Positions 23,373 through 28,639 of a DNA stretch of 64,000 nucleotides are shown piece by piece. This DNA is from Selaginella moellendorffii (taxonomy: Eukaryota; Plantae; Lycopodiophyta). The stretch spans positions 972,654-1,036,653 of the forward strand of contig NW_003314308.1 of NCBI RefSeq assembly GCF_000143415.4, given 5' to 3'. Position numbers and translations under genes: made by a program. The notes under the pieces are model-generated. The model saw only the letters and a program-made list of their open reading frames with translations. It searched no databases and was not told the origin of the DNA. Each line of letters starts with the position of its first letter. Position 1 is the first letter of the stretch.

Positions 23373-23567
23373 CTAGCAGCAGTACTGTCTCCGACGGTAG
23401 TAGCATTTCTTGGGGCACTCTGGTGCATTAGGATGAACTCTGGCCGTCCCCTTCGTCATAGTTGTCACGGTGGGGAGGTCCACTCTTGCAGTGGCAGGGC
23501 CAAAGGCAGCGAAGGCCAACACCAGCAGCAGCATCAACTTCATCATCAGGGCAACCTTCTTTGCCAT
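23373..23567 (-). CDS. Small secreted Cys/Arg-rich peptide precursor (64 aa)
   Basis: MAKKVALMMKLMLLLVLAFAAFGPATA|RVDLPTVTTMTKGTARVHPNAPECPKKCYYRRRQYCC*. Clear signal peptide, TATA box (tatataaa) about 70 bp upstream, and a GC-rich island in AT-rich flanks. Confidence 0.7.
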   Translation of the reverse strand: MAKKVALMMKLMLLLVLAFAAFGPATARVDLPTVTTMTKGTARVHPNAPECPKKCYYRRRQYCC

Positions 23568-24064
23568 CTCTCCAAGCAACTCCTTCCTGTGTTAAGATCA
23601 ACTCTTGAAAGAGCACTGCTTTCCTGGCTGCGTTTATATACCTTGTCAAGTTAGTGGGCTTGGAATATTGTTGACAAAGTACACCGCAGACTAGTCATAA
23701 TATTCCAAACCCACTAAGGTGACGAGGTGTCGTTTAAGAGACGTGCACGATTCTGAACACAGGATTCAAAATTGTTTTCTTTCCAAAATGTGAGCGTTCG
23801 ATTCAGCAATGAAGTCGAAAGATTTGAGAAGAATGTACAATAATCCAGCATCTGGGAATGCTGAGGTAAGATTTGAGAAGAATGTACAATAATCCAACAT
23901 CAAACTGTCTGGGAATGCTGCGGCATTGTTGTAAAACATGATCAAGGAAATCACACCTTTCTGCGCACGCGAAATATTTAAAAAAAAATTAAAATTCCAT
24001 TAATACATTTAACAGTTAAGTCCCTCCTTAAACCCTAAACTCTGAAACCTTAGAACAGTTAAGG

Positions 24065-26623
24065 CTACTCGTAGTCGGCCGACTTATCCAGCGGGGGCGT
24101 GAGCATCCCAAACGGGATCCTCCTCGAGTGCTTCCTCCTGCGCGTGATTCCCTGCGGCGCCACCAGCGCCTCCGCCCTGAGGCTCGCCACCGACACCCTC
24201 CCCGCCATCATCTCCAAGTAGTGCTCGAAGCACAGCGGGAACGACTTCCAGTCGTAGACGGAGTGGAGCGTCCCCACCCGGACAACCTCCATCCATTCCT
24301 CGCCCGACACCTGAATCCTCTTGAGCACCTTGTGGACGCGCATCAGGTACATGTCGATCATCCCGCTGTAGCATCCGATCACCGAGCAACACTTGCCTCG
24401 CAGGAACTGCCGGCTCATTCTCGTCAGCACCACGAACAGGAGATTGTCCCCGCACTTGGTATCGTGGCTCACCAGCGGCGGGACCAAAAACTTCTTCCCC
24501 ATGTTGCGCAGGTCCGACTCGGTGGGGAAGAACGAGGCCAGGTTGCCGTCCAGCCCGACCACCTTGATGTCGTTGGAGAAGGACTTCCGGATGTTCCTGC
24601 TCGACGACTTGTGCTTGGCGGCCAGCGAGAAGATGAGCGACCAGCGCAGGTGGTAGTCGACCGTCTTCTTCACAAACGCGAAGTTGTCGCAGCAGCGGTA
24701 GTAGTCGAGCCAGCGGTACGCCAGCCCCGAGTACCAGTGCAGGATGGCGATGTCCTCCTGCGCTAGCAGCATCCGGAAGTGCGTCGGCCTCCCACCTTTC
24801 GTCACGATCTCTCGCAGCCGCAGCTTGTCCACCAGTTCCATGATCGGCATGATCACCAGCAGCCGCAGCTCGTCCGCCTTCTTCACCTTGATCGGTGGCG
24901 GGTTTCCGGTCGATCGGGCCTCCTTCTCCGCTGCCAGCCGCTCCATCTTCTCCTGCTTCTGCTTCAGCCTCGCGTTGACGCCCCCCTCAGCGCTCACCGA
25001 GTAGTCGAGCTGGCCCAGGAACTTGTCCACCTCTTCCTGGAACCTGTCGAACGCCGCGATGAGCTCCTTGGGTAGCTGCTCGCGGATCCAGGGGCTCATC
25101 AGTATGTGGCCTTTCCGGAACTTCTCGCGGATCATCAGCCTCTCCTCCTCCCTCTCGCTGCTCAGGAATCCCCGGACCATGTCCCCCGCAACGCTCTCGA
25201 ACATACGCCGGACCGTCGCGTCGCCCTGGCTCTCCGACGACGCGTTCTTCCTCGAGCGGGTGTATATCTCCACAAGCATCTCAGCGCCCAGCTTCCGAAC
25301 AACCGCATCGTAGTGGTGCTTCATCTGCCGCTTCACCATCTCGATCCGGTTCTCCACCGCTCGCATCGACTGGATGCACGTCTGCTTCCGGAACTCGGGC
25401 ATCTTGGAGGGAGGAACGAACTGGAGCTGGAAGCCAAGGAAGTCACACTGGTTGAGGGTGGCGTCCATCAGCGTCTTCCGGCCCCGCTCCACCTCCGCCA
25501 CCAGCTTCTCGTTCACGTATACGCACAGCTCGTGCTGGACCGTGAGAGCAATCTCCTTCTGGCCCGACACAGCCAGCAGCACCTCGTCGCCATAGCGGCA
25601 TGCATACAGCCTGATCTTGCGGTCGGCCGGGTCGTCGCTCTCCTCGGCGGGCGTGTTGGGAGCTGACTCTTCAGTGATTCCAATATCAGCATCCGGGACT
25701 GAGGCCCTCGCAACTTTCACTTCCTCAGGCTCCTCCGGGTTCATGCTTGCCACCCCCTCCGCCACCTCTTGGATCTTCCAGTCAAGCTTGTCCAAGTAGA
25801 TGTTGAGAAGCATCGGCGAGAGGATGGGCTCCTTACAGAAGTCCTCCCAGTGGAGATTCCCCATGTCCATCTGGAAGACGCGGGCACGGAAGAGCTGCCG
25901 GAGGAAAGCTATGAGCCTGCTGTCTTCGATGGTTTCCTCAAGGATGGCCACCAGCACGTCGAAGTTCTCGAGCGTGAAGTGCCGCTCCAGCTTCATCTTG
26001 ATGAACCAGTCAAAGTACTTCCAGCGATACTTGATCAGCCTCATAGCCATATGCCTCCCTCTTCCGGGCCTGGAAGCAAACGAAAGGCTGGAGAACCGCG
26101 GCTCGTAAACTTCCTGAAGCGCCATCCGGGTGGCCTCCATGGCGATCTTGGTCTTGAGATTGGGAAGAACCAGCGAGCGAGTGGAGTTCTCCTTGGAAGA
26201 GACGAGGACCTCCACGCAGTTGGCCTTGACGTCAAACGTCCCAATCGCCAAGTCCCTGGACATGTGCTCTATCACCTCCCGGCTAATCCCATCGGCCTCC
26301 ATTTGCTTGGCCTCGTTTCCCAGGAGAGGCCCCGAGCGCTTCTTGATAGAATTGTAAGCGGCCATTAGATTGCTGGGAGTAGCTACTACATTCCTCATCA
26401 ACAATCGATACTTACCGTCCACGAAGATCCCGTCCACGCCCTGCCGGAACCTCTCCTGGTCCACGTCCTGGAAGAGCGAATTCACCTCCCTGGCGATGAG
26501 CGCTCTGTTGCTCGGCTCCTCCTCCACGGCGGCGGCCGCTGACCAGGCCGATCGATGCGGCGCGGCACTGGCGCCGACCCAGCAGCGGCGCCATGGCGCT
26601 GCCCGCCCCGCGCGTTGCAGCAT
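24065..26623 (-). CDS. nMAT: Nuclear-encoded group II intron maturase (nMAT), mitochondrial-type presequence, intronless
   Basis: RT-like blocks EVYEPRFSSLSFASRPGRG, ILSPMLLNIYLDKLD, YACRYGDEVLL and FLGF; domain X (ILHWYSGLAYRWLDYY..LRWSLIFSLAAKHK); C-terminal CSVIGC..PLCFEH remnant; Arg/Ala-rich N-terminus. Confidence 0.92.
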   Translation of the reverse strand: MLQRAGRAAPWRRCWVGASAAPHRSAWSAAAAVEEEPSNRALIAREVNSLFQDVDQERFRQGVDGIFVDGKYRLLMRNVVATPSNLMAAYNSIKKRSGPLLGNEAKQMEADGISREVIEHMSRDLAIGTFDVKANCVEVLVSSKENSTRSLVLPNLKTKIAMEATRMALQEVYEPRFSSLSFASRPGRGRHMAMRLIKYRWKYFDWFIKMKLERHFTLENFDVLVAILEETIEDSRLIAFLRQLFRARVFQMDMGNLHWEDFCKEPILSPMLLNIYLDKLDWKIQEVAEGVASMNPEEPEEVKVARASVPDADIGITEESAPNTPAEESDDPADRKIRLYACRYGDEVLLAVSGQKEIALTVQHELCVYVNEKLVAEVERGRKTLMDATLNQCDFLGFQLQFVPPSKMPEFRKQTCIQSMRAVENRIEMVKRQMKHHYDAVVRKLGAEMLVEIYTRSRKNASSESQGDATVRRMFESVAGDMVRGFLSSEREEERLMIREKFRKGHILMSPWIREQLPKELIAAFDRFQEEVDKFLGQLDYSVSAEGGVNARLKQKQEKMERLAAEKEARSTGNPPPIKVKKADELRLLVIMPIMELVDKLRLREIVTKGGRPTHFRMLLAQEDIAILHWYSGLAYRWLDYYRCCDNFAFVKKTVDYHLRWSLIFSLAAKHKSSSRNIRKSFSNDIKVVGLDGNLASFFPTESDLRNMGKKFLVPPLVSHDTKCGDNLLFVVLTRMSRQFLRGKCCSVIGCYSGMIDMYLMRVHKVLKRIQVSGEEWMEVVRVGTLHSVYDWKSFPLCFEHYLEMMAGRVSVASLRAEALVAPQGITRRRKHSRRIPFGMLTPPLDKSADYE

Positions 26624-26684
26624 TGCATTGTCCTAAAGCCCTAAACCCCTTTCCTCGCTCCCATTTTTAGGGTTCTTCGTATTT

Positions 26685-28398
26685 TCACTCGCTGACCAAG
26701 AGGATCTTGCCCGGGGAGGCCTGCAAATCAAATCCTGGCAGCGTTGGAGCGGAGTTTCAACGATCTTGAGGCGCGTACCTTGGCGAGGCTCCTGCGGATG
26801 GCATCGTCGTAGCGCTCCAGCGGGAATTTCTCGCCCACGAGCGGCTCCATGATCTTGCCCTCGAGGAGCTTCATCACGGTGGACGCGATCTCCCGGAATT
26901 CGTGCATTGATCGCTTGTAGATCCAGCGCTTGAGGTAGAACCCCTTGACGCTGACCTCGCGCAGCAGCAAATCCATGCCCGCGACGGACACCTCCGCCTT
27001 GTTCATGGTGCCGTAGACGATGACCGTTCCCCTGTTCTTGACGCTGGCGCAAAGAATCTGGCAGGAAGGATGGAGCGAATCAGTGGAGCTGGGTCGATTG
27101 GAGAGCTCTTGCCTTTGTGATCTCGCCGCCCAGGCAATCGATGGCGGCGTGCGCGAGCTTGCCATTGGTGATCTTCTTCACCTCCTTGACAACGTTTTCT
27201 TCCTTGAAATTGATCACGTAGTCGGCGCCCAGGCGGAAGAGCTCCTCCTTTTGCTCGTTCTTTCTCACCAGATTGATCGTCTGGAAATGGAAGAAACCGA
27301 TCGATCGATGAATCGTTCCAAGAAAAAAGGAGAAGAAAGGAGACCTTGATGCCCTTGTGGTGTGCGTATTGGATATACATTCTTCCAAGAACCGAGGAAG
27401 CTCCACTCTGGATCACGTAATCGCCGCTGGGAACCTCCAGCTCCTCCGCCAGAGCATACACTGCGCAAAAGAGATCCCTCCCGTGAGGAAGGAGTCCACA
27501 AACCCATCCAAGATCTTCCTTGCCTGTGAATGGGTTGACGAAGAACTGGCAAGCCACCTCGTTGGAGATGGAGTCGGGCACCGGGATGGTCACATCGGCC
27601 GAGCAGAGGAGAAACTCCTGCCATGTCTCGGGATCGCTCCACTCGAGAATCGGGCACACCCGCTGACCCACGCGCAGACCCACCACATTCTCCCCGACCT
27701 TTTCTCCCAGTCCAATCGGGTACCCGCAAAAAAGGAGAGGAAGAACACTATGATCGTCAATGCGAAACAGAGGAAGAACACTCCATCGCCAAGTATCCCA
27801 TCGCCAAGTACCACAAGCAATCAATCCTACACAAGAAGAAGACCCAAGAAGAGATCCATCCTCCTCGATCAATCACCAGGACATCCAAGCTTCTCGGAGA
27901 TCGATTGGGTCCCAGAAAGAAGAAGACCCAAGAAGAGATCCTCCTCGATCAATCACCAGGACATAATGCCAATTCCTCCAAGCTTTTCCAGGAGGAAGAA
28001 GAAGACGAAGAAGACCCAAGAAGATATCCTCCTCGATCATTCATGCCAATCACTGCAAGCTTTTCGGATCGCGATTGGGTAGTAGCATCAAACCAAACAA
28101 CAGGAAGAAGAGGGGAAGAAGAAAGATCGATCAAACAAGCTGGAGAGCTGACGATCCAGCTTACCTCGTGGATGATCCCCATGCCCTCGAGGCCTGGCAC
28201 CGCGGGGAAGGAGATGGGCTTCCAGGTGGGGTAGAAGCCCTGCAAGCACATAATGTCGGATGGATTGACTGGGCGGCACAGGAGCTTCACCACGACCTGG
28301 CCACTCCCGGCTCGCGGCGTCGCCACCCATCCAATCCGGCACGCCGCCGCTGGATCTTCCCGGTTATACGACAGGAGCTGGATCGCCCTGTGCATCAT
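26685..28398 (-). CDS. MDR-superfamily NADPH oxidoreductase (trans-2-enoyl-CoA reductase / quinone reductase-like), 6 exons
   Basis: Motifs PVNPSDI..G.YP..PAVPGLEGMG, QFFVNPFT, VIQSGASSVLGR, TINLVR, LGADYVIN, IVYG and C-terminal GKILL. Stop at 26685. Confidence 0.88.
27830..28040. repeat. Three imperfect tandem copies of aagaagacccaagaaga..tcctcgatca within intron 1 of the oxidoreductase
   Basis: Copies are visible near 27833, 27917 and 28008. Confidence 0.75.
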
Positions 28399-28639
28399 CG
28401 CCGCCGTCTCCTCGCTCTCGATTGATCAATGCTCTTCTCTTACGATCGAAGATCTAGTTTGCGGGAAGGACGAGCTCCTTTTATAACCCAAAGCTCTCGG
28501 ATTTGTTACCTCTTATTGTTTCGCGGGGTATTAGATTATGAGCGCCATGGAAAGACCGTGTGACCTGCGTAATCCGGGAGCGTCAATCCAGCATCTTTGT
28601 ACTCAGCAGCAAAGGCGTAAAACTTTCCGTTCCAGGCGT

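Follow-up and report, generated by a model that had tools for sequence, protein, structure and literature searches.

Angiosperm nMAT3 and nMAT4 are non-redundant nuclear maturases, possibly heterodimeric. The gene family and its division into types I and II have been published (Mohr & Lambowitz 2003 and Guo & Mower 2013, both as reported in PMC3927076; PMC10012718). The type I proteins nMAT1 and nMAT2 have no D/En domain at all (PMC3927076, PMC9321910). nMAT3 and nMAT4 have been grouped with the F10 maturases (Zumkeller & Knoop 2023, PMC10012718). In Arabidopsis, nad1 introns 1, 3 and 4 are spliced by nMAT3 and nMAT4 (PMC9321910). Eight nuclear maturases have been recorded in Selaginella, and the single type II protein among them, 'nMat6', is attributed to the same nuclear transfer as nMAT3 and nMAT4 (Guo & Mower 2013, as summarized by Brown et al. 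2014, PMC3927076). That Selaginella has one type II nuclear maturase is already known from that summary. The mitochondrial DNA of Selaginella has a GC content of 68% and about 35 group II introns, including nad1i669g2; its nad1i728g2 carries nad4L (PMC5654404).

The gene analysed here occupies 24065-26623 of the window, the whole 64-kb stretch of Selaginella moellendorffii DNA under study. It is very probably a single-copy type II nuclear maturase of mitochondrial-intron origin, and most likely a mitochondrial splicing factor. From the published description, the gene is inferred to be 'nMat6': the locus was equated by description and not by accession, and the published placement is exactly that found here. 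A preliminary description had read the protein as a hybrid of two nMAT subfamilies.

Gene structure, expression and domains

The ATG-to-stop frame encodes 852 amino acids (P0001) and is identical to a gene annotated on GL377612.1 (assembly GCA_000143415.2), within the interval 993718-1002276. On this 1.46-Mb scaffold the ORF adjoins spliced genes. A spliced ADH-like gene lies upstream, across a spacer of 61 nt. From 23981 to 26719, RNA-derived contigs of four independent studies run collinearly with the genome, and 0 joints fall within the ORF. That these contigs stem from RNA is shown by the upstream gene, five GT..AG introns of which have been spliced out of them. Two alleles of the ORF are present in RNA: seven of ten variant sites are synonymous, and the three replacements all fall in a poorly conserved insert. 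The gene is expressed, intronless and correctly assembled. The ADH-like gene and the maturase are joined in RNA contigs across the spacer, so that the maturase may be transcribed by read-through or as part of a dicistronic message. No Rfam family, group II intron domains included, was detected across the 64-kb window at gathering thresholds, and the ORF is therefore free-standing. It is nuclear and lies outside any group II intron, as is typical of type II nMATs, and not within domain IV of such an intron, the position of ORFs for active mobile IEPs. The preliminary description of an intronless 852-codon ORF with RT, X and a Cys-bearing C-terminal remnant agrees with the ORF list, Pfam, the alignment and RNA, and all motif strings it quoted are present in the protein. 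Its assignment to the nuclear maturases is likewise upheld by scaffold context, the lack of intron RNA in the window and the trees.

Table 1. Features of the maturase gene, with coordinates in the window.
Feature	Residues	Position	Strand	Evidence
Complete intronless ORF, 852 codons plus stop, type II (nMAT3/4-like) maturase		24065..26623	-	ORF list, gene-model match, RNA contigs
Presequence-like N-terminus	1-38	26510..26623	-	Composition; pLDDT; no counterpart in intron-encoded relatives
RT domain RT0-RT7 (fingers/palm), catalytically degenerate	60-402	25418..26446	-	LtrA alignment, Foldseek, motif table
YGDE replacing catalytic YADD (RT motif C)	344-347	25583..25594	-	Alignment, motif table
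Long predicted helical insert, RT7 to domain X	403-585	24869..25417	-	BLAST, predicted helices, alignment
Domain X (maturase/thumb)	586-715	24479..24868	-	Pfam PF01348, BLAST, pLDDT
Degenerate D/En (HNH) remnant	716-830	24134..24478	-	Alignment to intact HNH of Coleochaete/Calypogeia ORFs, nMAT3/4; BLAST
Short 3' UTR		23981..24064	-	RNA contig ends at 23981-24015 in four runs

The domains of the protein are listed in table 1. The first 38 residues include 6 Arg, 11 Ala and 4 Ser, with the first acidic residue not before position 34, and probably form a mitochondrial targeting peptide. AlphaFold predicts disorder over residues 1-52 (pLDDT < 50). A sequence search of the PDB gave LtrA as the best match, with residues 63-401 aligned to its RT and 610-691 to its X, and Foldseek matched the predicted model to group II intron RTs. 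Pfam reports a weak RVT_1 match at residues 146-356, and an acidic low-complexity stretch (approx. 286-335) stands in place of the RT4-RT5 insertion. Some 160-180 extra residues separate RT7 from X. AlphaFold places helices here at 410-460, 466-488, 492-503, 519-543 and 548-572, with modest pLDDT (approx. 50-75). This insert is common to nMAT3, the nMAT4 clade, a 905-aa mitochondrial ORF of Coleochaete and several metagenomic relatives; used alone in BLAST, it finds its best matches in the nMAT3 clade and Coleochaete. Domain X, where Intron_maturas2 (PF01348) matches residues 587-683 (E 5e-10), is the best conserved part, with approximately 40-50% identity to relatives and pLDDT of 80-90. The Pfam HNH model has no match in the 852-aa protein; BLAST with residues 716-830 retrieves Coleochaete at 7e-8. 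The protein thus has the type II combination of RT, domain X and a D/En domain that is kept but mutated, and its D/En remnant sets it apart from type I nMATs.

The active sites are extensively altered. RT motif A is changed from EFDI to KMKL, with loss of the Asp, and PQG is replaced by CKE. Motif C is YGDE here, YLDE in nMAT3 and Y/FMDE in the nMAT4 clade. In the D/En remnant MHH has become MYL (catalytic HH to YL) and HH..H has become HY..M; the remnant retains the Cys pair and C..H. Neither the catalytic RT triad (motif A Asp, YADD) of active mobile IEPs nor their set of HNH histidines is present. Judged by these changes to the motif A Asp, PQG, YADD and the HNH histidines, the protein is predicted to be unable to reverse-transcribe or to cut DNA. 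This supports the earlier reading of YGDE as the mark of an RT-dead protein that would act in splicing only. nMAT3/4 show these inactivating changes too, in both halves: they affect RT motifs A, B and C as well as the HNH histidines. Inactivation of RT and HNH therefore probably came before lycophytes and seed plants diverged.

Phylogenetic placement and alternative readings

Relatives were collected with phmmer, run exhaustively against 1.84 billion representatives; the 150 best matches were considered and 30 representatives were labelled. Dozens of NCBI names underlie the label of the nMAT3 clade; the nMAT4 label of a second seed-plant clade was deduced and is not a source name. By phmmer and labelling, the nearest relatives are nMAT3, the second seed-plant clade (here equated with nMAT4) and two ORFs, one mitochondrial from Coleochaete and one from Calypogeia. 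Relatives are no more than 27-34% identical to the query, and the terminal branch measures approximately 1.2-1.3 substitutions per site. Word-indexed homologue searches, with the query or with a 9-sequence alignment, are blind at about 30% identity and returned only the query and one Cinchona gene model. The nearest ESM Atlas clusters are nMAT4 (0.97), nMAT4-like (0.97) and nMAT3-like (0.96). Each half alone matched only bacterial fragments about as long as itself, either RT-only or X+HNH, which do not discriminate nMAT subfamilies; the C-half matches agree with an X+HNH architecture.

Residues 40-395 and 396-830 were placed in separate maximum-likelihood trees (IQ-TREE, LG+C20), built from sequences that did not include angiosperm nMAT1/2. 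The N half recovers a clade of query, nMAT3 and nMAT4 at 100/99 and the C half recovers it at 100/98; within it, nMAT3 and nMAT4 group without the query at 96/92 (N half) and 100/97 (C half). Half-trees of 64 rows give the same placement, with support of 99 for query plus nMAT3 plus nMAT4 in both. The next lineage outward in both half-trees is the Coleochaete mitochondrial intron ORF with the Calypogeia ORF. The query accordingly belongs to the nMAT3/nMAT4 clade and is a maturase related to these plant proteins along its whole length. Its exact branching is less firm. AU tests on 25 rows did not reject query plus nMAT3 or query plus nMAT4 for either half (p 0.15-0.23). Given the low identity and long terminal branch, long-branch effects could account for its placement outside nMAT3+nMAT4. 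The 30 labelled representatives include no nMAT1/2. P0112, another nuclear maturase of Selaginella, has no D/En and served as a rough stand-in for other Selaginella maturases; both 64-row half-trees place it at a great distance from the query. Affinity to nMAT1/2 appears, indirectly, to be excluded. RefSeq calls P0112 'nMAT3-like', yet it lies far from nMAT3 in the trees.

The hybrid reading combined an N half from an nMAT4/3-type gene with a C half, from LQFVPPS onward, of an nMAT1-type gene. Its first part holds, since the half-tree and alignment show the N half to be nMAT4/nMAT3-like. As a whole it is very improbable. Its sole support is a shift in relative similarity near residue 400, upstream of which identity to the nMAT4 clade equals or exceeds that to nMAT3 and downstream of which nMAT3 is clearly higher. 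The nMAT4 clade is much more diverged in the C half, where most windows of 60 residues beyond residue 400 are 11-27% identical, and the apparent switch near residue 395 probably reflects such differences in rate. The supposed nMAT1 motifs align directly with nMAT3: LQFVPPS corresponds to LELQAVPPS, IREQLPKELIAAFDRFQEEVDKFL to IRDQFPQELIDAYDKFQEQVDKHL, FPTESDLRNMGKK to FPTELEIRRWGDN and GTLHS..PLC to GAIHES..PLC. The C half also ends in a D/En remnant with the His-to-Tyr change of nMAT3/4, a domain that nMAT1/2 lack (PMC3927076, PMC9321910). Nothing among the 150 best phmmer matches was identified as nMAT1/2, and all strong C-half matches belong to the nMAT3 clade, Coleochaete, Calypogeia or close metagenomic relatives. 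Both halves occupy the same position in separate trees with strong support, the outcome set beforehand as refuting a recombinant, and the AU tests reveal no conflicting preference between them. RNA contigs from four studies run collinearly and unchanged through the proposed junction (approx. nt 25438), which is not misassembled. The other reading offered earlier, a relic of an ancestral architecture, survives only in the mundane sense that the gene is a single-copy sister of nMAT3+nMAT4 in the best tree.

An assembly artefact or mitochondrial insertion (NUMT), in place of a working nuclear gene, is more improbable still. The high GC of the mtDNA would fit an ORF of 61% GC amid a neighbourhood of about 40%, but the frame is intact over 852 codons, flanking intron RNA domains are missing, and a presequence-like extension unknown from the intron-encoded relatives is present. 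The RNA evidence, on which this candidate was rejected, comprises transcripts in sequencing runs from four studies, and a pair of alleles whose replacements are confined to the poorly conserved insert; a spliced nuclear gene lies only 61 nt away on the 1.46-Mb scaffold. A specific nMAT3 orthologue, with nMAT4 lost in Selaginella and the nMAT3/nMAT4 duplication older than the lycophyte/euphyllophyte split, is unlikely, though less so than either of these. A FastTree analysis of 150 representatives made the query sister to the nMAT3 clade alone, indel patterns in the insert are common with nMAT3, C-half identity to nMAT3 is the higher, and the AU test does not reject query plus nMAT3 (p 0.23 and 0.15). 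It equally fails to reject query plus nMAT4, however, and the faster C half of the nMAT4 clade, with its long branches, explains the difference in identity. The FastTree placement was not upheld under the site-heterogeneous model, and the better-modelled LG+C20 trees put the query outside nMAT3+nMAT4, with the support given above.

Proposed origin and function

The following course is proposed for the type II maturase. (i) An ORF of cobi824/nad1i669 type, carried by a mitochondrial group II intron, would have moved to the nucleus. (ii) The Selaginella gene would descend from it as sister, and co-orthologue, to seed-plant nMAT3 plus nMAT4, as in the best tree. (iii) The Arg/Ala-rich presequence would direct the protein to mitochondria. 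(iv) There, the RT-fold and domain X would bind group II intron RNA and assist its folding and splicing. Splicing of mitochondrial group II introns is most likely its only role, by analogy with Arabidopsis nMAT3/4 (PMC9321910), and nad1 introns, including nad1i669g2, are candidate targets; the sites predicted are nad1i394, nad1i669 and nad1i728.

Whether one protein does the work of two is a finely poised question, with the balance slightly against. The Selaginella gene may represent an undivided, pre-duplication nMAT3/nMAT4 that serves alone, perhaps as a homodimer, for both angiosperm proteins. If so, an undivided maturase works amid about 35 group II introns, with nad4L rather than matR in nad1i728g2, and would offer a simple system in which to ask how introns are served by a single type II maturase. 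The single-copy protein is a possible simpler model for the nMAT3/nMAT4 pair. Otherwise the gene adds little beyond housekeeping to a family and division already published. The contribution here lies in refuting the recombinant origin, in showing expression, intronlessness and assembly, and in the inactivating changes that the protein has in common with nMAT3/4.

Comparison with known maturases

LtrA of Lactococcus lactis Ll.LtrB (PDB 5G2X, 8H2H) is the best match of solved structure (sequence E 2e-23, Foldseek E 3e-16). It shares the order RT, X, D/En and lacks the insert of approximately 160 residues between RT7 and X. LtrA is an active RT and endonuclease encoded inside its own intron. The closest non-nMAT relatives are the 905-aa ORF of Coleochaete scutata (YP_009710036; 'maturase R' QIQ23010) and the 960-aa ORF of Calypogeia fissa, which align over the full length at 29-35% identity. 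Both have the helical insert and D/En, and each half-tree makes them sister to the type II nMATs. With YADD, motif A Asp and HNH histidines intact, they look like active RT/endonucleases, whereas the Selaginella protein has lost all three and is free-standing in the nucleus.

nMAT4 of angiosperms and gymnosperms (Arabidopsis AT1G74350 family) has the same architecture and dead active sites, and N-half identity to it equals or slightly exceeds that to nMAT3. The nMAT4 clade differs by an insertion of its own in the helical region and by its more diverged C half. Angiosperm nMAT3 (Arabidopsis AT5G04050 family; 'nuclear intron maturase 3, mitochondrial') is only 28-30% identical, has YLDE for YGDE, and pairs with nMAT4 to the exclusion of the Selaginella protein in the best trees. 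The latter adds the acidic stretch, 20-30 residues at about 536-565 and a basic C-terminal tail of 25 residues. nMAT3 and the Selaginella protein are each encoded by an intronless nuclear gene, and RT, helical insert, domain X and degenerate D/En are collinear between them. They share a Y-x-D-E motif C, loss of the motif A Asp, a PQG altered at Gly and replacement of the first HNH His by Tyr, and the motifs of the insert and C terminus correspond one to one.

A transcribed, intronless nuclear gene

The ORF encodes a type II nuclear maturase of Selaginella. Its composition (61% GC, 86% GC3) contrasts with a neighbourhood of roughly 40% GC. Pfam places domain X (Intron_maturas2) at residues 587–683 (E 5e-10) and detects RVT_1 weakly. 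The best solved relative is LtrA, whose RT aligns to residues 63–401 and X to 610–691. A 25-sequence AlphaFold model has a mean pLDDT of 67; RT and X are confident, and long helices are predicted with modest confidence at residues 410–572. By fold, Foldseek matches LtrA and further RTs of group II introns. RT motif C (residues 344–347) reads YGDE. The preliminary description of an ORF with RT, X and YGDE was thus correct by the ORF list, Pfam, the LtrA match, AlphaFold and motif C.

Coordinates of the maturase gene, its linked variants and the neighbouring stop codon
Feature	Position	Strand	Detail	Source
Maturase ORF, ATG to stop	24065–26623	minus	852 codons	ORF list
Linked SNP, bubble 25205–25255	25205		A>G, R473R	contig bubble, 4/4 RNA runs
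Linked SNP, same bubble	25232		C>G, E464D	contig bubble, 4/4 RNA runs
Linked SNP, same bubble	25239		G>A, S462L	contig bubble, 4/4 RNA runs
Linked SNP, same bubble	25255		A>C, S457A	contig bubble, 4/4 RNA runs
TGA of upstream ADH_N/ADH_zinc_N gene	26685–26687	minus

The stretch is present in 20 runs from nine studies, and RNA contigs from four studies were placed on 23500–28400. These cover 23981–26719 collinearly, with no joint in the ORF interior in any of the four. Five GT..AG introns of the upstream gene (minus strand) are absent from these contigs, which are therefore RNA-derived. The protein had been proposed to be a hybrid, with its junction at codon about 396 (nt about 25438). This position lies well within contigs spanning 25256–26719 in all four runs, and a misassembly there is not seen. 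The sole contig break in the maturase region falls at 25204/25256, where four linked SNPs form a heterozygous bubble, one branch being exactly the reference; the cluster suggests that there are two alleles or haplotypes and that both are expressed. Seven of ten variant sites are synonymous, and the replacements (S457A, S462L, E464D) all fall in the poorly conserved insert. The gene is expressed, lacks introns and is correctly assembled.

The maturase is called as a gene on scaffold GL377612.1 (1.46 Mb) of assembly GCA_000143415.2, its ATG 61 nt downstream of the stop codon of the spliced upstream gene. No Rfam family, group II intron domains included, was found within the 64-kb window. Given this place beside a spliced gene and the absence of Rfam families from the window, the ORF is free-standing and nuclear. 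In three of the four runs (X1, X2, X9) a single RNA contig leads from the ORF interior through the spacer into the upstream gene, with all five introns spliced (25256–28310). Such bridging could reflect read-through, a dicistronic transcript, or simply UTRs that overlap and were joined in assembly. An out-of-frame ATG (26626–26628, minus strand) precedes the start codon of the maturase by 5 nt.

Relatives and their labels

In an exhaustive phmmer search against 1.84 billion representatives, no relative exceeded 34% identity. The best matches include a mitochondrial ORF of Coleochaete scutata (905 aa), an ORF of Calypogeia fissa (960 aa), a clade named 'nuclear intron maturase 3' in dozens of NCBI records, and a second seed-plant clade with Ginkgo, Spirodela, Ananas and Erythroxylum. 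This second clade is taken as nMAT4, a label inferred because each of the two clades includes one Erythroxylum member, because type II nMATs number only two in angiosperms (PMC3927076), and because the ESM Atlas clusters nearest the query bear such names (nMAT4 0.97, nMAT4-like 0.97, nMAT3-like 0.96). MatR representatives lie farther away. No representative identified as nMAT1/2 occurs among the labelled best matches of this search.

Several relatives deserve separate mention. The Calypogeia protein (P0004/P0154, CAM6096936.1), the closest land-plant relative outside nMAT3/4, retains YADD and the HNH histidines. The contig on which it is annotated is, at 18.9 Mb, of nuclear size, and the ORF could be either a recently inserted mitochondrial sequence (mat-cobi824g2-like) or a nuclear copy that is still active. 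Another S. moellendorffii nuclear maturase (P0112, XP_024522060.1; also XP_024528727.1; 634–652 aa) has HGTQ at motif C and lacks D/En. Its RefSeq name is 'nuclear intron maturase 3-like', yet in both half-trees it sits on a very long branch well away from nMAT3, and on this placement the name looks wrong. In a Cinchona calisaya gene model an nMAT3 orthologue (residues about 56–763 of P0002, 1479 aa) is fused to a PPR protein, probably through annotation merging of adjacent genes. In the Ginkgo biloba nMAT4-clade model Gb_01717 (P0012) the domain X region aligns in scrambled form, and the model is likely mis-predicted.

Common ancestry of the two halves

The proposed hybrid joined an nMAT4/nMAT3-like N-terminal half to an nMAT1-like remainder. 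Alignment A1 pairs the query collinearly, between residues of about 60 and about 830, with nMAT3, the nMAT4 clade and both ORFs of organellar type. All motifs read as nMAT1-like have direct nMAT3 counterparts there: LELQAVPPS, IRDQFPQELIDAYDKFQEQVDKHL, FPTELEIRRWGDN and GAIHES..PLC. By BLAST, the insert alone (396–585) best matches the nMAT3 clade and Coleochaete, and the C-terminal 137 residues match Coleochaete, Calypogeia and nMAT3. Separate trees (LG+C20+F+G4) were built for residues 40–395 and 396–830. With 64 rows, both place the query, nMAT3 and nMAT4 together in a clade of 14 rows (SH-aLRT 99). In careful 25-row trees this clade has support of 100/99 for the N half and 100/98 for the C half, with Coleochaete and Calypogeia branching next outside it in both. 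The query and nMAT3/4 also share inactivating states in each half: loss of the motif A Asp (EFDI to KMKL), a replaced PQG Gly and YADD changed to Y-x-D-E in the first; the first HNH His changed to Tyr and later His residues lost in the second. Type I nMAT1/2 wholly lack the D/En domain according to reviews (PMC3927076, PMC9321910), so the C-terminal remnant is not nMAT1-like. The hybrid reading is therefore rejected, both halves belonging to one nMAT3/4 clade. An nMAT1/2 affinity is excluded indirectly, by exhaustive-search ranking, architecture and the motif-by-motif nMAT3 match. Sliding windows show much greater divergence in the nMAT4 clade than in nMAT3 downstream of about residue 400; relative similarity thus shifts there with ancestry unchanged, which would explain the apparent switch.

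The halves carry no conflicting signal. Within the clade, nMAT3+nMAT4 without the query is supported at 96/92 (N half) and 100/97 (C half); AU tests reject neither query+nMAT3 nor query+nMAT4 in either half (p 0.23, 0.21, 0.15, 0.15), so that more than one branching order inside the clade fits. With its long branch, the query may be either the sister of the nMAT3+nMAT4 pair or an nMAT3 orthologue that has diverged.

Probable function and published counterparts

In Arabidopsis, the mitochondrial proteins nMAT3 and nMAT4 are each required for splicing of nad1 introns 1, 3 and 4 (PMC9321910). About 35 group II introns are present in the mitochondrial genome of Selaginella, among them nad1i394, nad1i669 and nad1i728, which are arranged in cis; nad1i728 carries nad4L (PMC5654404). 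The query would be imported into mitochondria via its Arg/Ala-rich presequence and serve as a splicing cofactor that binds RNA but has neither RT nor endonuclease activity; any target introns would presumably be mitochondrial. The earlier suggestion of a splicing factor only gains support, as the motif A Asp, PQG Gly, YADD and HNH histidines are all changed.

This kind of gene is already known, and the query has very probably been catalogued. nMAT3/4 have been grouped with F10 maturases (cobi824g2, nad1i669g2) (PMC10012718). Citing Guo & Mower 2013, PMC3927076 gives eight Selaginella nuclear maturase loci, four of type I and one of type II, 'nMat6', which it ascribes to nuclear transfer of a mat-cobi824-like gene, the same transfer as for nMAT3 and nMAT4. 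The present locus is presumably 'nMat6', and its placement agrees with the published picture of a single Selaginella type II maturase.
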